Of a stretch of 64,000 nucleotides of DNA, positions 1,471 to 17,471 are shown piece by piece. Position 1 is the stretch's first letter. Every line of letters begins with the position of its first letter. Source of the stretch: Trichoplax adhaerens (taxonomy: Eukaryota; Animalia; Placozoa); the NCBI RefSeq assembly GCF_000150275.1, contig NW_002060945.1:9006011-9070010 (forward strand), read 5' to 3'. A program made the translations under genes and the position numbers. The notes below the pieces were generated by a model that saw only the letters and a list, made by a program, of their open reading frames with translations, was not told where the DNA came from and ran no database searches.

Positions 1471-3152
1471 TGTTCAAAAGATACGGAGGCTAATAATCAA
1501 TCATTGCATACTATTTTTTATTAATTGCCATTCTTATCTTAGCCTATTTAATATTGGTGTAGTAGAATCTTGATCGAATTTGATGTACTTCTATTTATCG
1601 AGGTATTACCCTATACTAAATTGACACAATAAATCCATTCTTAGCTAAGCCTAGGTAATATTAATGGAATAGAATTTAGACAGAGCTCTATATACTCCTA
1701 TTTGTCAAGGTATACACTAGATCGATAAGCTTATCAATCCTTAAGCTGGAAATTAATCATGCCTTCACAAGTAGACTCAATCAATCAATCCAACATCTCT
1801 TTGGGAACCAACTCCAATTTCTATTACTTTTATTAAATAAGCTGTCATCATTATAATTATTGACAGTTGGTAAAGTCAAATAGGATCTTCCTTGTATGTT
1901 ATGATCATTGTAGCTAAATAAATGGAATCCTGATTCATATAGTCGATATAGTATAGTTTTAGCTTGGAATAACGAAGATAAATCCGTTACTATCAAGAAA
2001 AAACAAAACTATATTAGCTGTATGATGATGGCTATTCCTTCATCATCACTTTGTCCAGCTTACGTCAATTGATTAACTATGAACTAATGACGATCAAAAG
2101 TAATTTATTGCAACATTGGGATGATCGAGTAAAAGACATTATTCAATCTTAAGCGTTTGTTATTTATAGGTAGTAAGTTGATCGTATTCAATGATTACAT
2201 CGACCAGTTTATTTCTTTCATATCGAGTTGTTTTTACCGTAATAGACATAAACGTTGAGTATAACATGCCTATACATTAACTGATGATTTTAATTGAAAC
2301 AATAACGTTCAAGAAGAATATTTTATTGTCATCCATGACAGTTAAATCATCAAGATAGGCAGTTATTGGATCGATGTTGTCAATGTGGTAGAAGAAAGGA
2401 TAAGCGAAGAAAAAGAGAGAAAAAAAGACTGATCTTCTACTTTTATAATAAGACGATGGTGATGATGAAAATAAAAGTGATTTTACCATTTCCAATTAAT
2501 CATCATCATGACAATAACATAGTATAAACACTATGGATACAATCAACAAAAAAATGGAAAAAAATCCAATCGACTGCGTCATTGGGTGGAAATCTTGCAA
2601 TCTCCCAGTCTATAACTAAAGACAATCTTTTCAATAGTTGATTTTTTCATTCTTGTTTAATTAAGTCATTTTTTTATTTTACTTTGTCTCCTATTTGTTT
2701 TTTATTCTCTTGGCTTGAATTATTTTTCTAAACTCTTACGTCTTTGTTGACGTTGCAAAAATAATTTTATTTGTAAATGACTACTCAAGCTTACGTCAAT
2801 AAAACGGGATTCTATTTGAAACAGGGACCAGCTGGATAGAGGTTATAGTTTTCACCTTGGTATTATCCATTCTTCCATTCTATTTTGTCTTCTGATTCTA
2901 TAGAATACACCCAATTTAGAATAGTTCAATTTTTTTTTCTTACTGGATAGGCAGTAATTGTTGCTGCACTCATTCGTTTTGTCCTATTGACTTTTAATAC
3001 TACGACAACTCAAATTGATTTTAATGTAATTGAATAACATCAAAGTTATCGGGGAGAAAATAACATCTACTATTTCTCCTGACTTGGATGGATGATTTTG
3101 AACCAATGTAATCCTATCTATCTCTTAATCTTTCCTACTATTCTATTATTAG

Positions 3153-6100
3153 ATGTTAGTACGCCATCCAATCTACCTATCGATCCAGCCAATTTAGGTA
3201 TGACAACCATGCAGGTAAATCATGATACAGCGAGTTCATCGCTTCAACGTGAATTAATGGCTATGCAACAGCAACGACATCAATTAGAGCAACAAAAATT
3301 ACAGCAACAACTTCCACTTAGTCATCAACAGCAACCACCACCCACTGGACAACATACTATTTTACCCTTATTTCCACCGGCAACAGCAACAGCTGCCCAA
3401 CTTTTATATCGTAAACGTAATCAACACTTAGACCATATCCAATTGCCACGACAACAATCTTTGCCGGCATCCCTTGAGCAACATTCGCCATTAGATCGAT
3501 TTCCAGATTCACAGCGAGGTAAAAGAGTAATCTAATAGTATATTCTATCCTTTTATGATTGATTCATCTACTTTTCAAGAAGTAATTGCAACTTTATCAT
3601 CCCGTAAGAATCATAAATTAGTTGAATAGTTGAAGTTCAATTCGAGTAGGTTGAGAAATAGATTGAATAATTGCATACTTCCAAGTATTAAGATAGCTCT
3701 CTTTCCTACCTCTTCTCCCCCAAATTGTAAGCGATCATAATGATTCTGTCGCTAGAGCCTATTATACAAATAGAGTAGTCTAGCTACAACCTCATGGTAA
3801 AATAGTATTTGAATTCGTGCTTAATAGGCTTCCTATAGGGTAGTGTTGAACTATCATGGCTTATACCAATAAAGTGTTGTTATTTTAGCGATTAGAGTAG
3901 ACAAGTATTAATCATCAATAGACTTTATAATTTCTTCTTCTTTCAATTCGACTCCAATCGTCATCATACTGGTGACTTGAGCTACGAATTAATAAATAAA
4001 TGATGATTAGAAATAGTTATATTAATGAGTAATCTAAACTGATTATCTCGTAATTACACTCATGATATCTATTAAGACATTGATTGTAGTCTAGTAATTA
4101 CTTATGTTGATCTATTCTTGATTGAAATAGAGTAATGCTATGTAGATTTGCTAGAGCTAGATCTATTCTTGATTGAAATAGAGTACTGCTATGCAGATTT
4201 ACTTAGGTTGATCTATTCTTGATTGGAATGGAATACTGCTATGTAGATTTACTTAGGTTGATCTATTCTTGATTAAAATTGAATGCTAACGTATAAATTT
4301 ACCTAAGCTAACCTGTTCTTGATTGAAATAGAATGCTAATATGTAGATTTACTTTGATTAATCTATTGTTTGATTGAAATAGAACGCTGACGTCGGCATG
4401 TAGATTTACTTAGGTTGATTTATTCTTGATTGGAATAGAATGCTGATATAAACATGTAGATCTGCTTGGATCAATCTTCTTTAAATACTGATGACATGTA
4501 GACTTTTACTTAACTTGATCTGTCCTTAGTTAAATACAAGTAGAATGCCCGCATATATACAGAGATTTATTTACTATACGTTGATCTATTCTCGTTGGGA
4601 ATAGAGTGTTTGTATAGACGTACAGGTTTACTTATGTTGATCTATCCTTGATCGAAATACTAGCAAAATGTCTACGTAGATATGGAGATTTACTTCCTGC
4701 GTGTTGATCCATTCTTGACCGAAACAGAATTTTTACATAGATATATAGCTTTAATAATGTTGTCTTGCCTTGATTGAAATAGAATACTTACATAGATATG
4801 TTAATTTTACTTACGTTGATCTATTCTTGCTTAAAATAGAATGCTTAAAATAGAATAATTACATAGATGAGTAGTTTTACTAATGTTGGCTATACTTGAT
4901 TGAAATAGAATACCAAATTAGATACATAGATTTTACTTATATTGATCTATTCTCGATTAAAATAGAATCTTTACATATATATAGATATTGATTTATGTTG
5001 ACAATACTTTATTGAAATAGATTACTTAAATTTGATGTGTAGATTTTAATTATATCGATTTATTCTCGATTAAAATAGATTGCTTAAATAGATGTAGACA
5101 TTGACTTATATTAGCTATACTTGATTGGAATATATATGTAGAGTTAACTTAGAGAGATCTATTCTTGATTGAAAAGGAATGTTTACATCGATATCTTCAT
5201 TGACTAACTTCAGCTATCCTTGATTGAAATAGAACGCTTAATTACATACGTAGATTTTACTTATAGTGATCTATACTCGATTGCAATAAAATGATTACAT
5301 GCATTTATACTTTGACTTATATTAGATATATTGGATTGAATTAGAATGCTAAAATACGCTTGCAGATTTAACAATGTTGATCTATTCTTTATCGAAATAT
5401 CCTTCATCCGTAAACACATAGATATTCCTATACAATTAGAGTAGTGTCGATACTCTGAGACATAGAAATTGATGGGAAAATATGGCTATGTTATTAACCA
5501 TAAATTGAATTATTGACCCTTCTAGATGGCCATAAAGATGTTAAACAACGATTACAAGAATTTGTATTAAATAAACAGCAAAGCATGTCTTCAGGTAGTA
5601 CACCATCAACACCAACTAAATCGGATCATTTCCAGCCTAGCATATTCTCGCCAGCTCAGGAAATTGAACGAGAAAGTCGAGAAGCAAATGCAAAAAGACC
5701 AACTCAAGGGGAACGAGAATTAACCAAGAGAGCATTACGGGATCCTTTCCCTTTGCGTAAAACAAGTAAGTACATGCATTGAAAAGGTTCATTCAACTCC
5801 CTTCATTTCTATTTTTAATTAATTTTCTCCCTTACTTTGTTAACCATCGTAAATATTAATTAACAATGACAGTTGAATGTCATTAACATCGTTTGGTATT
5901 TCAATTTTATTGCTACCACTTGAATGGTAACTTTAGTGTCGGAACCCGATGTGCAAAATATGAAAATGAAATCAAAGATGAAATCCCAATTGACTCGATG
6001 CTATCGTAAAACGCCTATAGGAAGTCCAGCTAGTCGTCGTCGTGATATGTTTCGATCTACTCATTGTCGATCTTATAGTAGTAGTAATGAAGATGTAAAT

Positions 6101-9100
6101 TATGAACCTCGTCGAAGACATTATCAATCATTTGAAGGTATAGTAACATTCTCATACTGAAATAAGTTCTCTAAATCAGTCCATCAGTAGGAAAGCTGTT
6201 GTTTAATCCTGATTTACGTTCATTAAAAAACAATTTAAACTCTTCATTTTAAGTCTACAAGTTTAATATCAGATCTCAAGTTTAGAACTACGTATTTTTT
6301 ATATCAAAACTTTTCCTTTTGACCTAAAACGCGTCAAGTCGTTGTTTTCTTTTTCATGGCAGTTATTGCATAGGCATCTATTAACTAATTAACTTGATAA
6401 TTAAATCTCCGCTTCAGTATTTGGATTTTGCAATTAATTCATCAGATAGCTAAAATACCTAATTTATCTATACTAGTACTGCTATTTCTTTGTCATTGTT
6501 GTATAGTAATGAAATTGAGCCCTCAATTAAATGTCCGTAACCCTAATATCGTGCCTTAAGTATAGAACTACATTTTTCTATATAAGCACTTTTCCTTTTG
6601 ACCTAAAATACCTTTATATGATCGTTTTCGTTCGCTTTAAAGTAATCGTGTAGAGCATTTATTCTCTCATATATTTTTTTTAAAATGAACTTCCATACGT
6701 TGCGCAACTATTTTATTGGATAACTTTTAATCTATTGCTTGCGATCTTACTATTTATTTAATCAGTCACTGTAGTTAGTTCGATAGTTTCATATTTATTT
6801 ATCAAGTCAATCTCGATAATTGATTATATTTCCCTTAATCAACTTACTTACTTTAATCAGTCATTATAATGTAGCTTAATAATGGCATGTTTATGAAATT
6901 AGCAACTGATAATCAATTGGATTTTCCTTGATCGTCTTATTTATTTCATTAACCATTATAATGTACCGTAATCATTCCATATTTATAAAATCAGCAACCT
7001 ATAATCAATTTAATTTTTCTTGATAATATTTAGTTAATCGGTAATCACAATTTAGCTTGTTAGTTCGTATTTAGGGAATCAGCTATTGATAAAAAAATTA
7101 ATTTTTTCTTGATCATATTAATTACTTCGTCATGAGCCGCAATTTAGCTCGATACTGCAATATTTATGGATTTATCACCAAGAATGGATTTTATTTTTCT
7201 TGATCATGTTAATCAATTGATTATTAACCATAATTTAGCGTGATAATTTCATATATATGGAATTCACCATCAGTAAATAGTTTGATTTTACAGTTCGCTA
7301 ATTGAAATTATTTCATGAGAAGAATACTTTAATTAATTAGCTGTTGACTACTTTATCTGCAAGCATTACTTGGAGCTTAAGGTGATAAATTGGTCTACGA
7401 TTTATTTTTACTCACTAGCATTAGATTTTCTCGTTATTATACCAAATAGCTAAATATAAATTAAAGTATTAACGACATCTTGAATTGTTTATAATAGAGG
7501 ATAGCAGAAGTGGCACAAGTAGCCCACTATTAGAGTCGAATCCATCACCTACTGGGAGTAAGGTCTGTTAAAAAGTGAATTATAATCTAGATTGCAGATA
7601 CAGTACTCCATTGCAGATTGTTTCGCTTAGGATCCTTGATTTCAAGTACTATCTTTCATATCGCAAGGATTGATAATTCCCTATAATACTGACGTTTCTG
7701 CCTAATTTAGTTATCGTTTAATGATTGTGTTATTGGTTGCTAATTTTAGCGATATTTTAGATTTCTTGTCTATTAAGTTAGCAATAAGTCTAGGCTGAAG
7801 TCTCATTGGAGTTGCAAATTTTTGAGCTGTTCAATTTGTATCTATTTAAATAGGAATCACTACATAATTTGAATATTAGTGGGCAAGATAAAGTTGCTGC
7901 AGCTGAATTACTATCCAGTGCAACACCACTTACATTGCCTTCATCTTCTATAACATATCCAACAACAACACCACATGGTAGGTTCCATATTTTAATAATT
8001 GCAACGGAGTTTTGAGCATAAAGACTGAACATATCCAGTATTTACAATACTACAGAAAGGATAATCTCGTGGAAAAAACATTTATTATTTCATTTTGTTA
8101 TTATATCAAGAATAAAGTTTTAATCAAGTTTTAGGAATATAAATAATAGTAATAGAGTTATTACGATAATCGACAGTAGATAAATTTTTACGTAATATTG
8201 CCCCAAATAAAACGCTACGGTATCTAGCTGAAACCCGAAAAGCAATACTGCTAAGATTTACTTCTTGTCTCATAATCTGTCATTTAAAGATGTGATGCAA
8301 TCTAGTAAGTGGCTATGGATGTAAGTTAGTAAGGAAATCTTACCGATTTGTTATAAATTATAAATAGAAAGAATTTAAAGATAAGGTGTCGATCCTTCAT
8401 TATCCCACGTTGTTGATACTTTAATAATGGTATTAATCATGTCAATATATTCATCTGCACCATTTATATCACTTTCCCAGTCTTAATACAGTATAATTTG
8501 ATATAATACTAAGGTTATTAACAATTGCTAATTCGAATAAGTGAGAAAAGGTGTTATTCTACATTTAATGCACTTTGGACCGTATCTGCTATACATTTAG
8601 ATACTTCAGCGTATAACTCATTTTGAATTTTCTTTTTCTATTTCAAGCACAATTTGGCGTTGGGTATTCATTTCCGATCTCATCTGTACATCCTTCCCAT
8701 ATGCTAGGTGGTCTTGTTAATGTTGGAAACAACGTTAATTTTACTGATAGTTCACAAGCTGCTCATTTTCCTCGACCTGTTGAACCAGTAACGGGAATAC
8801 AATCACCTCATAATACACTATATAATTATCCTACGCCACAAATGATAACATTAGGCGACGCAATGAAAGACAATTTACCGCCTAATTTTATTTCAACTAA
8901 TGTTGGCTCGATGTCTACATCAACATCTGATAATCAACAACCTTACCCTATTTCTAACTATATTTTACCTAATAATCCAGCTCTAAATCAGCAAATGCAT
9001 CAGTTTTTACAACAGCAACAATCTCAACAGGTTGCTATCGTTTCAGTTTTTATATGCTAATATTATTAAATTAATCCATTCTAAAATTTGGCTTTTATCC

Positions 9101-12100
9101 TATGTTAATTGTAAAATTATCGTAGATGTTGATGTCGGAAATATTTATGCTATATAGATATTACTACAGCAGCAGCAACAACAACAGCAACATAAGCAAC
9201 AGCAAATGTACTTTTTAGAGATGCAAAGGCAGCATCAAGAGAATATGAATAAAGCAGCCAGTGCTGTACAAATGCAAGGTAGTTTATTCTATTATTCTAA
9301 TTTATTTCTGGTAAACATTATAATTGAAAAGAGAACAGTTGTAAAATGGTTGATGATAACTAGATAGTTCTTTAGAATACGATATAGCTTATATATATAT
9401 TATTGCTAGGTGGATTTAACATATATATCCATTTTAAAAATTATAAGTTATGACATAGATGAATATCTTAAGCTGTGCATTATTTTACTTTCAAAACACT
9501 GTAGCTGATCAAGAACGAGTGGAACAAGTACCTAATGTAGCTTATGTAACTATGCCTACCAGTGGTCTATCAGGTCAACAAATAACTGGCATTGCTTATG
9601 ATAATATTATGCAAAAGCATATGTGTAAGTGTGAGAATCCAACAATTCATCGAGAATCAGGCGGTCGATTGCAGAGTATTTGGGCAAGACTAAGAGAAGT
9701 TGGAATACTTCGATATTGCGAAGTAATGATATCATATTTGTGTATAGTAACAAGCATAATATACTTATATCATTCAGGATATAACGTGTGAAAAAGATCG
9801 ATAGCGTTATCATACATGCTCATTAATGGGGGCTATTGTCATTATTACTGTTATATTAATTTGCTATTAATTAATTTCAAAATCTATTATAGAAAATTAA
9901 AACACGAAAAGCGACTACACAAGAATTACAAACAGTTCATAGGTCTGAATTAAAATAATAATTCTATGATAACTAATGAATACGAATAGTAGTAGTAGTG
10001 AATATCGTTATATTTTTACTCTAGTGAAAAGTATGTATCGTCCTATTTGGATAAAATGCAAGTAACTGCTAAAACAGATCATGATGAACTAGAAGGTAGG
10101 ATATCATAACATAGATAGAATCTATATAATAAAATTCATAATAGTTTATACAAGTCTTTCTGCTTGCCAATGGGAATATTACTAATTTTCATATTAATTC
10201 TTTTAATTGTACCTAGTGGATGTCACTGATGTATCGACAAATGATTTAAATTTAATCCGATTACCATGTGGTGGCTTAGGGGTAAGATTGGATGCAATAT
10301 TAATGCTTTAATGATGAATTTAGTTAACTCTATCGAGACTCAATTTTATTTCTCTAGATTGATAGTGAAACTGTATGGGATCCATGTCATACACCTAAGG
10401 CGGCTAGAATTGTATGATCATAAATTACACTATGTTATTTCACTTCTTGATTTACATTGACGAATTTGTTTATTCCAGGCTCGAGTCTTATGATATTAAG
10501 TATTGCCTTCTTATTTATTTTAGGCTGTTGGATGTGTCGTGGATCTAGCAACTAAAGTAGCCAGAGGAGAGCTACGGGTACTTAATAAATTTTGATCCAA
10601 TTTAATGATATTCCATTTTAGTCTAATTTCAGCCATTTTAATTTTCTCTTAGAATGGCATGGCAATTGTTAGACCTCCAGGACATCATGCTGGACGTGAT
10701 ACAGCAATGTAAGGATTGAAAATAGTTTCAGATTTACCTTTATAAATCCTGTTGAGAAAGATAATTCCAAGACATTAAAATCTACTTGATGTAGGGGAAG
10801 CTGCTACTTCAATTCAATTGCAATTACGGCTAGCATTCTGAAGCAAAAATTGAACCTACGTAAAGTTTTAATATTTGATTGGGTAACTATAACAGCAATT
10901 AGAATTAGCGCTCCCTAAAATGATCACTACATTAGAAATATTGATTTCAAGATAATTATTATTATCTGAAATATTTATCTTATTTATTTTAAAGGATATT
11001 CATCATGGAAATGGCACACAGAATACATTTTATGAAGATCCAAATGTTCTAACAATCTCAATACATCGATACGATAAAGGTTTATTTTTCCCTGGTACTG
11101 GTGCGATTACTGAGGTAGACAAACAGATATTAGAATATCTATTCTGTGAAACTTATTAAATCATGTTTAAGAGAGTTGCAGATAGTATGTAATCGTATCA
11201 TACTCACGACTAGTTGTAATAATTTACAGGTAGGAAATGGATCTGGAACAGGCTTTAACGTCAACGTAGCATGGGATAGCGGATCAGGTAATATCATTTA
11301 GAAGATCATCAATTGCTAGATCATGTTATATATTAAAGCAATTTTATTATTTTCCAATTCTATTTAAATTGAAATAGATGTTAAAATGGGAGATCCAGAA
11401 TATTTAGCGGCTTTTAGGTAAATTTTAACTATCGAATTTTTTGTTTTAAGCATACTACAAATGGATAACAGTAGTACATGCATTAAAATCGATGCTCACA
11501 AATCTACATAGTCTCATATCGGATATGTATATCTTTTATATAGATAAAAGCTGCTCACTTTAGTTGAAAAATGTACGTCTAATATTTCAATTTAAAATTT
11601 TATTTATTACGTAGATGTGTGGTACTACCTATTGCAAAGATGTTCAGTCCTGATATAATCTTAGTATCAGCTGGTTTTAATGCAGTTGCGGGACAAGCTC
11701 ATGAAAATTTTAATTATAGAGTATCTCCTGCATGTAAGTAAAGCATTTTAGTCTATAGGATCCTTATAACAAATTCTAATCTTCAATAGTTCTAATTACT
11801 GATGCTTTCTTTGATATCATGTAATATATATATTTTACATATACCCATTTTGGAATTATGGCGGATATTCCTGACGTAAATCATTGGTATAACTATAGGT
11901 TTTGCAAATATGACAAGAAAATTAATAGAAAGCATCAATAGCAAAATTGTACTAGCCTTGGAAGGAGGGTAATTATAATAGATATCTACCTAATTTAAGC
12001 TGCTTGTTTTGAGACAATATTTTATGAATGACAAATTATTAAGTTAAAATTTTATCTATAAGGCACGATTTACCTGCGATTTGTGATGCCTCTGAAAGTT

Positions 12101-12408
12101 GTATGAGAGCACTACTATTAAGCGACCCCATGCCTGCTGTATCAAGCGAAGAACGAAATAAAGAGCCCAATCAGGCGGCTGTTAAGGTTTTAGAGAAAGT
12201 AATTCAGATTCAACAAGAACATTGGCCGCAGATTAAGCGAATGGCATCGTATACTAAATACTCGCAAAACGAGGCCGAACGGCATGAAAAAGAAGAAGTA
12301 GAAACAATATCTGCTTTAGCAGCTTTATCTATGGGTGTTACAAGTGAGTTTGAAAATGTACTCATTCATTTATTACATTTAGATTTTAAAAATTATAAAG
12401 AGAACTAA
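3153..12408 (+). CDS. HDAC4: Class IIa histone deacetylase (HDAC4/5/7/9 orthologue), 21 exons, ~950 aa, likely catalytically impaired
   Basis: Manually spliced GT-AG exons with consistent phases: 3153-3518, 5526-5765, 5937-6137, 7498-7562, 7854-7977, 8648-9030, 9158-9278, 9505-9722, 9893-9942, 10025-10095, 10217-10281, 10358-10411, 10524-10577, 10653-10708, 10795-10882, 10995-11114, 11230-11287, 11378-11417, 11615-11733, 11899-11968, 12063-12408 (or donor after 12343). Motifs: Q-rich N-terminus; MEF2-binding [13 protein letters not shown]; FPLRKTMSEP (14-3-3); [16 protein letters not shown]; [10 protein letters not shown]; LPCGGLGIDSET; RPPGHHA; [10 protein letters not shown]; FFPGTG; LEGGHDL; C-terminal NES-like [16 protein letters not shown]. 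The start is unresolved: in-frame ATGs at 3092 and 3200, acceptor at 3151-3152. From ATG 3200 to stop 12408 the product is 953 aa. Confidence 0.95.
4095..5400. repeat. Intronic minisatellite, ~24 degenerate units of ~50-57 bp
   Basis: Recurrent core GTTGATCTATTCTTGATTGAAATAGAATGCT..ATGTAGATTTACTTA, counted about 24 times inside the HDAC intron 3519-5525. Confidence 0.9.
6755..7275. repeat. Intronic degenerate tandem repeat, ~90-bp unit, about 6 copies
   Basis: Recurrent ATTTTTCTTGATCAT...AATTTAGCT...TTCATATTTAT...AATCAGCAAC..TAATCAATT in the HDAC intron 6138-7497. A separate ~50-bp direct duplication (TAGAACTAC...CTTTTCCTTTTGACCTAAAA) lies at ~6283 and ~6563. Confidence 0.7.
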
Positions 12409-14682: not shown

Positions 14683-17471
14683 TATAGCATTTCTTTAGCG
14701 TTAGCTATCAGATACCCGTGATGGTAAATACAAAATTGAACCAACTCTATTTTTATGAATATTACTAAACTGTCGCGATAGAATTCCTGACTTTAATTAA
14801 AAAATAAAATTCTTTCATCGATCCCATGATCCCATTATCGTGCTAAAAATGTGTTCAAAATTTTACTTAGTCATGATTTATGAAAGACATATTTATAAAG
14901 ACTCCATTTCTAACAACTCCGCATTTCTACTGTAGAAATGTTGCAGATTCCGATTCTTTTGCGTTAGAAAAGAATAATAGCTAGCTAAATTAAAAATGAT
15001 GGAAAGCAATAATGTTGTACGCAATAATTTCATATGATCATTTTAACAAGAGTCAAACTTGTTTACGAGTAGAAGCAGGTGCTGAAGAAATTCCATTAAT
15101 ATTGCACTAGATTATTGTCTAATAGGATGTCACTTTTAATACACAACTATTGTATTGGATAGCGTTCTAGCATTACATAATAAAAGTCACGCTTATATTG
15201 CTAATTTAAGCGTGAAAGATGATCCCATAGTGATGTCCAGCTGTCTATTGATCTTTTAAATTATTTCCGTATATAATTTTATGTATTTTATAATATTGCT
15301 TTCTATTGACTTTATTAGATACTATTGCAAATGAGAAATTGCAATCCTACTTTAATAAAAAGGATTATACTGTATTAATAGTCTACTTTTTATTCCAAAC
15401 AGAGAAAGTCTCGATTCAAATTGCTCAGGTTAATTTTTTATAATAGCATAGTCTTAAAAAATAAAATAGACGTTTTTAATGGAAATAGATTGCAATTTTT
15501 GTTTTTTGGGATTATTTCCATTAATGAATGTATTTTGGTAGCCATATTTAAAACGGAAATTTGCTGTTTTAAATTGAATTAAAATAATAAGCTATCTCTT
15601 TCTTTTTCTATGCTGGCAAGATGTAAAAAATTTACTATATCGTCAACTGCCGTAATAGATAAATGTTGACTGTACAATATCCTTCATTTATTTTACTTAG
15701 GTAATTTCTACTCAAATATCTTTACTTCGTTACTTTTTACTGCATTAATAAACAACTAAATCGATATGTTACTTCATCATTGTAGCTACATTTATTAATA
15801 ATTGAGTTCAGAATAATCATACAATGGAATAATGAACGTATAATAGAGAAGTACCTTTTACGAGTCATATTTTAAATATTTTTTATATATGTTCAGTATG
15901 ATTATATCGATATATACACATCTGGCATAGAGGATCTATTCAATAGCCATTAACAATAGAGGTTATAGAATAACAAATTAGCTATATTCATTCGGGTAGC
16001 ATTCATATGTTTACCTACTAAAAATTTTAAAGAATTAATAAATAAACTGGGCTAGAATTGATTTTCTTTCAATACGTGGTAATCGCTATGTCTAATAGAA
16101 TCAATAAAGATATAGCAAACTAACCATATCTATTAAAGTAATAATCATATACTGTAATTACTTGGTAAATTTTAAAGGATTAAAATAGAAAATGAGGTGT
16201 AATTAATTTTCTCAATATAAGGTAGCGCTGTATAAAATAGATACTGTCAAATAGACTCCAGATTAAAATAGAGTAGATTTAACACGAATTAACTATAAAA
16301 TAGTCGGCATAAAGTTATTAAGATAATAATCAGTAAGCTTTAATTAATTCGAAATCGAGAAATTGCGAGAATTTTATATTGATACCAGAATTCTTCTGGT
16401 CATCCTAGCAGTAGTGATCAATAAATTGTTAGTTTTATCAAGGAATATCCTTTCTAGCATATCCTATCATGACTAGAAGCAAAACAAGAATAGGTTGATT
16501 ACATTGATGAAGAATAACGGGGGAAATTTAATATTTTTAATAGGTGATAGAGGAAATGAGCTACGGAAACATCTGTGCTTATTATACGAGATAAGAAAAG
16601 AACAGCAAACCTAATAAACAGGAAATAAATAATAGAAAGAACAAGTTATACAGAAATAACTCGAACATATAAATTCAAGAACAGAAAAATACTTGATAAG
16701 TATATCGAAATCAAATTATACTGATGGTTGATAGATAAATCGTTAGGAAATGATTTCTTTTCTTTTCATATACGGCTTTCTTCGTTCACATAATCAAATC
16801 GTAATATGCACCAATAAGTCAATCCATAATTAACCGATATTAATTAAAATAATCGAAATGGCTACTAAATATTACAGTACGACCTATAAAGTAGATGGTT
16901 GAATTATTACAATAAAATATTAGAACTTCTAATCATCATTTATGCTAGTAGATTGTACATTCATAAAAGTTTAGTTGTTAGGCAAAAGAAATATAAGATC
17001 CTGTTATTTATCAAGTAAGCTAGCGACGGTTTAAGGAACTGTTGAATAGGATGCAATTATAACTATACATGTTATTTAATTTAACAAATTATTGCGTATT
17101 CTTTGATTAGTATCTCGAACTACTTATCAGGATTAATTTCGCATGAAAACTGTAAATTTTTTCTAAAATTTTAACGGCAAAAACGATATAGACTTCTTCT
17201 GATGCATTAACGGTTAAATAAGGAACTCTATTTATTTAAAAAAAATAAGTCATTTTTATATCTTTTATCTATATTTGCGAGTAGCCGCATACTAATAAAC
17301 AATATGGCAGTCGCGTATTCTTAGACCTAATTTTGTACCTAATTTTGTATCACTTTATGCTTTTGTCACGGTACGAACTACTGTGAAGAAATAGCTACCT
17401 AAATTTGGTGAATATAATATAGTGATAATACAACTAGTTACTTACAATAGGAATTACTCTAATTATAAATG

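Follow-up and report, generated by a model that had tools for sequence, protein, structure and literature searches.

Introduction

Class IIa histone deacetylases of vertebrates (HDAC4, HDAC5, HDAC7 and HDAC9; PDB 2VQJ and 3C0Y) combine a MEF2-binding helix, a 14-3-3 site, a deacetylase fold with a structural zinc site and a C-terminal tail, and they carry His in place of the transition-state Tyr at position 976 (human HDAC4 numbering is used throughout), a change that reviews place in vertebrate evolution (PMC12383505). Their catalytic domains have been read as inactive, as activated by an unknown mechanism or as performing a different chemistry (PMC4505066), and the title of a 2025 review still describes class IIa as "...with Unclear Enzymatic Activities" (PMC12383505). 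As the vertebrate proteins lack only the Tyr, latent activity is still possible for them. Here, we analyze a class IIa HDAC gene of the placozoan Trichoplax adhaerens that lies in a stretch of 64,000 nucleotides (assembly GCF_000150275.1, contig NW_002060945.1, positions 9,006,011 to 9,070,010, forward strand), hereafter the window. The encoded protein shares all of the above features with vertebrate class IIa HDACs, and its domain is about 56-58% identical to theirs, but it also has altered D934, F812, D759 and loop 939-945. Class IIa HDACs have already been called pseudoenzymes; to judge from its codons, the active site of this gene has been eroded further, and in a non-vertebrate.

Several of the altered positions have been studied in human HDAC4 with respect to co-repressor docking. 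In structures of HDAC4 with SMRT peptides, F812 and F871 hold the Ile of the GSI motif between them, a hydrogen bond of D759 is required for SMRT, and the substitutions D759Y and F871L/S weaken binding (PMC6294515). In addition, co-precipitation of NCoR1/HDAC3 is abolished in the engineered D934N mutant and lost in H803A (PMC5881490, which cites Fischle 2002 for D934N; see also PMC10317903 for this mutant). D934N is the same substitution at the same position as in the window gene; however, the engineered protein was made in the laboratory with this one change in a site that is canonical elsewhere, whereas the Trichoplax change is natural and is accompanied by other changes in the pocket. Class IIa genes of other non-vertebrates (Nematostella XP_048579720, Glandiceps, Apostichopus, Lingula and Babylonia) are orthologous single-family genes with the N-terminal motifs and with domains 51-59% identical to that of Trichoplax, but all of them keep D-H-D, GFC, P.LGGY and EGGY and look competent.

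The reading that we consider probable, with considerable room for doubt, is that the Trichoplax gene encodes a selected, catalytically dead class IIa adaptor, tethered to MEF2 and regulated through 14-3-3, which would work without the NCoR-HDAC3 bridge of the vertebrate type.

Active-site residues of the Trichoplax gene

The gene was searched in the assembly of 105.63 Mb (1414 contigs, about 30% GC), and its exons were modelled by three-frame translation and anchor-based exon finding in window coordinates on the plus strand. Each window exon was then searched and aligned individually against the references. The deacetylase-fold domain of the class IIa HDAC occupies 14 exons at 9505-12408 on the plus strand, all of them with AG/GT borders and consistent phases:

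9505-9722, plus strand: catalytic-domain exon 1, with the structural-zinc residues C667, C669 and H675, plus H665, and with HRES at 9648-9659 (PDB matches to HDAC4 and HDAC7 only, E 8e-11)
9893-10095, plus strand: exons 2 and 3 (9893-9942 and 10025-10095)
10217-10281, plus strand: exon 4, LPCGGLG, with the structural-zinc Cys751 kept
10358-10411, plus strand: exon 5, IDSETVWDP, with D759 changed to Glu, V756 to Ile and N763 to Asp
10524-10577, plus strand: exon 6
10653-10708, plus strand: exon 7, RPPGHHAG, with His802-His803 kept (10683-10688) and E805 changed to Gly
10795-10882, plus strand: exon 8, (M)GSCYFN, with Phe812 changed to Ser (AGC, 10799-10801)
10995-11114, plus strand: exon 9, DIHHGNGTQ...FFPGTG, with D840, H842 (D-I-H, 10995-11003) and Phe871 kept (PF00850, E 6.6e-15)
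11230-11417, plus strand: exons 10 and 11 (11230-11287 and 11378-11417), with G896 changed to Ser and P900 to Val
11615-11733, plus strand: exon 12, with Asp934 changed to Asn (AAT, 11679-11681) and loop 939-945 changed from HPTPLGG to QAHENFN
11899-11968, plus strand: exon 13, ...KIVLALEG(G), with G966 changed to Ser
12063-12408, plus strand: exon 14, with His (CAC, 12064-12066) at position 976 and the stop codon TAA at 12406-12408

Human HDAC4 numbering was fixed via PDB chain 2vqj, in which the chain index plus 644 gives the HDAC4 position (F812 = 168, D934 = 290, H976 = 332); the numbering given in an earlier sequence-only reading of the window agrees with this. In the alignments, the window Asn of SAGFNA corresponds to the Asp of GFDA in HDAC4, HDAC6 and HDAC7, and the window Ser of GSCYFN to F812. 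The catalytic zinc triad is accordingly incomplete, with D840 and H842 present and Asn at position 934, and the Phe pair of the lysine tunnel is broken, with F871 kept (FFPG) and F812 replaced by Ser. The transition-state Tyr is absent as well, since EGG is followed by His at the Y/H976 position, as in vertebrate class IIa proteins. At the rim of the pocket, DSDT has become DSET and HPTPLGGY has become QAHENFNY; the replaced loop 939-945 is as long as the canonical loop and introduces His941 and Glu942. HPEH of the L1 loop reads HRES, with Arg at P676 and Ser at H678; in the open conformation, H678 can serve as another ligand of the structural zinc (PMC4505066). On the other hand, the His-His charge-relay dyad H802/H803 (RPPGHHA) is intact. 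Each codon that the sequence-only reading had named, including those of the retained His-His dyad, DIH and the structural zinc site, was found within an exon as described there. Since a zinc ligand, the tunnel Phe and the transition-state Tyr are all lost, established HDAC enzymology would make acyl-lysine hydrolysis by this protein very unlikely, and its lack the most likely state.

The reading frame of the domain is intact. Its 440 exon codons contain zero stops, whereas stops occur in the introns, read in all three frames, at a rate of 0.095 per codon (P ~1e-19), and the 26 splice borders of the model are all intact. GC content is 39% in the exons and 25% in the introns. In exon 14, a GTGAGT donor at 12344 could add one further exon, and the C-terminal stretch of this exon resembles a nuclear export signal. 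The sequence-only reading had proposed a frame of 21 exons; fourteen of these are now modelled on the plus strand, and about seven N-terminal ones stand only as open frames or tblastn matches that are not fully delimited.

Comparison with natural class IIa proteins

As a reference set, 14 natural class IIa catalytic domains (Nematostella and bilaterians) were taken from a search of a representative library, and each window exon was added to their alignment as a separate row (mafft --addfragments). Two columns of the short, variable exon 3 were misplaced and were excluded. The mapping of the window was kept exon-wise, as tblastn read-through gave false changes at intron borders. Among the 108 columns that are invariant in the 14 references, the window keeps 94 and departs from 14 (H678S, V756I, D759E, N763D, E805G, F812S, G896S, P900V, D934N, H939Q, L943N, G944F, G945N and G966S). 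When each reference was left out in turn, it showed between 0 and 7 departures, which were mostly conservative and in no case at a catalytic residue. Identity of the window exons to class IIa proteins, from those of cnidarians to those of vertebrates, is 50-59%. This overall identity, together with the 14 departures clustered in the pocket, argues that the gene is not generally fast-evolving. The view of the sequence-only reading that this is a class IIa HDAC whose active site has been dismantled while the fold was maintained is borne out in that the substitutions are genuine and pocket-specific.

The Asp and Phe that are substituted in the window gene are elsewhere nearly invariant, as that reading had also stated. 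Among fetched natural class IIa proteins, D934 is kept in 41 of 41, G811-F812 in 42 of 42, DxH in 41 of 41 and H803 in 44 of 44. Position 976 is more variable, with Tyr in 28 and His in 9 of the fetched proteins whose LEGG motif could be read. At this position, the class IIa proteins read here from named non-vertebrates have Tyr, as opposed to the window His (12064-12066); compared with vertebrate class IIa, the His976 of the window arose outside the vertebrates. A search of metagenomic loci with exon 1 gave 12 class IIa loci from JGI metagenomes, none of them close to the window gene, which were used as a survey of residue states. Nine of the 12 cover the positions in question, and all nine keep D934, F812 and LGG.

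Class IIa identity, regulatory motifs and copy number

The window gene is a class IIa HDAC of the HDAC4/5/7/9 type. The PF00850 (Hist_deacetyl) profile matches exons 8, 9 and 12 over profile positions 121-253, and exon 9 alone (55.6 bits) exceeds the family cut-off of 27.9 bits. Moreover, the full catalytic domain aligns exon by exon with Nematostella HDAC4. Among all PDB chains, exons 1 and 14 match HDAC4 and HDAC7 only, which places the gene in class IIa. The structural-zinc subdomain of this class is present (exon 1 encodes C-K-C...H, exon 4 LPCGG), and so is the class IIa C-terminal extension (HDLxAICDAS ... ETxxAxAxLS), as exon 14 aligns with residues 332-412 of the HDAC4 chain (E 1e-11).

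Adaptor features of class IIa proteins, namely a MEF2-binding helix and a 14-3-3 phospho-site, are found upstream of the catalytic domain. The helix keeps the Leu and Val equivalent to human HDAC4 L175 and V179, and the 14-3-3 type site is the equivalent of human LRKTASEPNL (S246). The upstream part of the gene contains the following:

3083-3532, plus strand: probable first coding exon of a Gln-rich N-terminal region, an open frame whose borders are not fixed (tblastn gives weak matches to natural class IIa HDACs in their Gln-rich N-termini)
5537-5581, plus strand: MEF2-binding helix (tblastn alignment to five natural class IIa proteins)
5747-5956, plus strand: 14-3-3 type site FPLRKT/(M)SEPDVQ, interrupted by an intron whose donor GTAAGT follows 5765 and whose acceptor precedes 5933
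7473-9364, plus strand: linker exons as open frames whose borders are not fixed, Ser/Pro-rich at 7473-7568, 7854-8012 and 8617-9057 and Gln-rich at 9158-9364

The genome also encodes MEF2, with MADS and MEF2 domains. An exon with a canonical MEF2-type MADS and MEF2 domain lies on the same scaffold at 6683335-6683451, 2.3 Mb from the HDAC gene.

The window gene is the sole class IIa copy in the genome. Exons 1, 8, 12 and 14 had no other related match anywhere in the genome, and the genome matches of exon 9 were to distant paralogues only (at most 56% identity over most of the length). Since these searches find nothing but distant paralogues, there is neither an alternative exon nor a second class IIa gene; the canonical paralogue that the sequence-only reading had named, together with a lack of expression of the window copy, as a reason to abandon its interpretation was thus not found by genome-wide exon searches. 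The other HDAC loci belong to class I (L001, L004 and L007) and class IIb (L012), and their alignable motifs are canonical: GFC and DxHHG are present in L001, L007 and L012, and GxD and GGY in L001 and L012, while the alignment of L004 is limited to its N-terminal part.

Marine metagenomic genes with eroded active sites

The best library match to exon 1 (61% identity) was a class IIa-like gene of a marine animal on ENA metagenome contigs (L014-L020), TARA and SOLA samples among them. The gene has few introns, and the contigs have 40% GC and lengths of up to 292 kb; they include ERZ25073835 ctg56848 and ctg56096, for which full lengths of 95-292 kb are given. The gene was located as follows:

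L014, 2250-4429: marine dead class IIa gene
L016, 10001-12340: the same gene; further copies on L015 and L017-L020

The active site of this gene shows H803M, G811V/F812G, H842E, D934N, D759Q and H678S and a deletion of loop 943-945, and Tyr976 and the structural-zinc motif are kept. A comparison of the L014 and L016 forms over 360 codons, summed exon by exon, gave a synonymous divergence (dS) of ~1.1 and a nonsynonymous divergence (dN) of ~0.018, i.e., dN/dS of 0.016. Such a ratio indicates that very strong constraint can act on a class IIa fold even when its site no longer works. The marine lineage shares with the window D934N, H678S (HKES as against HRES) and alterations of F812, D759 and loop 939-945; it differs in that H803, H842 and G811 are also lost, the loop is deleted, Tyr976 is kept and introns are fewer. 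Because the identity of the marine lineage to the window (53%) does not exceed that of other animals, the shared changes, D934N included, are probably convergent. The idea that these contigs come from a relative among the placozoans, with D934N inherited from a common ancestor, found no support: identity to the window is 53%, GC is 40%, introns are few and the best named match is Nematostella (55%). On L016, the gene is flanked by a fragment of a retroelement reverse-transcriptase-like open frame and by a long (GA)n microsatellite (16517-16972 and 484-856).

Another variant was observed in four class IIa loci from JGI/ENA metagenomes (L021, L022, L026 and L028), which have Ser at H802 in an otherwise canonical active site. 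PPGSHAE could be read directly in L022, L026 and L028 (GC 33-58%). Ser at H802 may be another recurrent variant of the class IIa active site.

Proposed function and alternative explanations

With its MEF2 helix, 14-3-3 phospho-site and Gln-rich segments, the N-terminal half of the protein appears intact. The protein would most likely act as a co-repressor adaptor under signal control whose N-terminus docks on MEF2. Selection would have preserved the dead domain as a structural, regulatory or other partner-binding module, the export-signal-like tail and the structural-zinc subdomain being kept along with the deacetylase fold. From the pattern of residues, we infer a loss of catalysis, a loss of vertebrate-type NCoR docking and selection acting on the window gene itself. 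Several points weigh against this adaptor model. The carbonyl oxygen of Asn can in principle ligate zinc, and the new His941/Glu942 of the replaced loop could supply a metal ligand. The human D934N result stems from a different protein background. Finally, with regard to the conservation of Asn934/Ser812, the representative-library search with exon 1 returned no placozoan relative, its best match being the 61% identical marine gene, and a word search with the open frame of 110 aa around exon 1 yielded no candidate.

The changed residues are those that vertebrate HDAC4 needs for the GSI motif of SMRT/NCoR, which makes recruitment of NCoR-HDAC3 in the vertebrate way unlikely; by analogy with HDAC4, the Trichoplax domain probably does not perform it. 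At the docking positions, H842 and F871 are kept, and D759, F812 and D934 are Glu, Ser and Asn, respectively. The sequence-only reading had suggested that the fold serves as a scaffold for the NCoR/SMRT-HDAC3 complex; this part of it does not hold up well, as all three of these residues, needed for docking of human HDAC4, are changed. We consider it unlikely that a dead domain still bridges to the NCoR/SMRT-HDAC3 complex as a docking platform in the vertebrate mode. In favour of this explanation, much of the SMRT-binding surface is kept (C667, C669, H675, C751, H842 and F871; PMC6294515), D759E is a conservative change, and class I HDAC loci occur in the genome, as does an NCoR-like gene recognized by a GPS2_interact match at 73163-73282 on the minus strand (L039/L037, contig C1393:53300-73299). 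Against it, human HDAC4 loses NCoR1/HDAC3 upon D934N or H803A (PMC5881490), and F812, one half of the Phe sandwich for the GSI Ile, is Ser in Trichoplax. Moreover, a scan of every frame of the gene strand, covering 40 kb from the NCoR-like match, showed no G-S-I-x-x-G-x-P motif, which is a weak negative, as the frames were scanned without a gene model. The NCoR-like gene itself appears compact, spanning ~4.5 kb and including a Ser-rich open frame of 479 aa, and is followed by a short-chain dehydrogenase gene.

The pocket might instead have been remodelled, with Asn934 and a new ligand from the His941/Glu942 loop holding a metal or ligand and Ser812 widening the tunnel, so that a bulkier acyl-lysine or a non-lysine ligand could be bound or hydrolysed; the sequence-only reading had offered a wider pocket for a different acyl ligand as its alternative. 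The retention of the His-His dyad, D840, H842 and F871 is in line with this, as are the exactly canonical length of the replaced loop, its added His and Glu and the good conservation of the rest of the domain; if true, a natural re-purposing of the active site would be described for the first time in a class IIa HDAC. However, Asn at 934 occurs in no sampled enzyme of the arginase/deacetylase fold, and Tyr976 is missing too. The marine lineage with D934N has also lost H803 and H842 and is still strongly constrained, which indicates that constraint needs no chemistry. We therefore give a remodelled pocket only a slim chance. It is even harder to regard the gene as a pseudogene, decaying or unexpressed but so far free of stops and frameshifts. 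The loss of several catalytic residues would be expected of such a gene, but it is the sole class IIa copy, its 440 codons are free of stops and its 26 splice borders intact next to introns with 0.095 stops per codon, 94 of the 108 invariant positions and the MEF2 and 14-3-3 motifs are kept, and the changes are non-random, falling in the pocket; we consider a pseudogene very improbable. An artefact of sequencing, assembly or exon modelling is hardly credible. AAT and GAT do differ by one base; nevertheless, fourteen invariant positions differ, two or more bases must change to turn TTY into AGC, a loop of seven residues has been rewritten, and an alternative GFDA or GFC exon is absent from both the window and the rest of the genome.

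Implications

The window gene is thus the single class IIa HDAC of an early-branching animal, without a zinc ligand, the tunnel Phe and the Tyr, in which the fold, the structural zinc site and the regulatory motifs are kept. No publication linking Trichoplax or placozoans with class IIa HDACs or HDAC4 was found in the searchable literature library. The three cases described here, namely the window gene, the marine lineage (L014-L020) and the genes with Ser at H802, suggest that the active site of class IIa HDACs has been eroded recurrently in animals and that a non-catalytic role of the fold is conserved. With one class IIa gene and one MEF2 gene, Trichoplax would offer a simple system for the function of this domain without chemistry, and possibly without NCoR docking of the vertebrate type.

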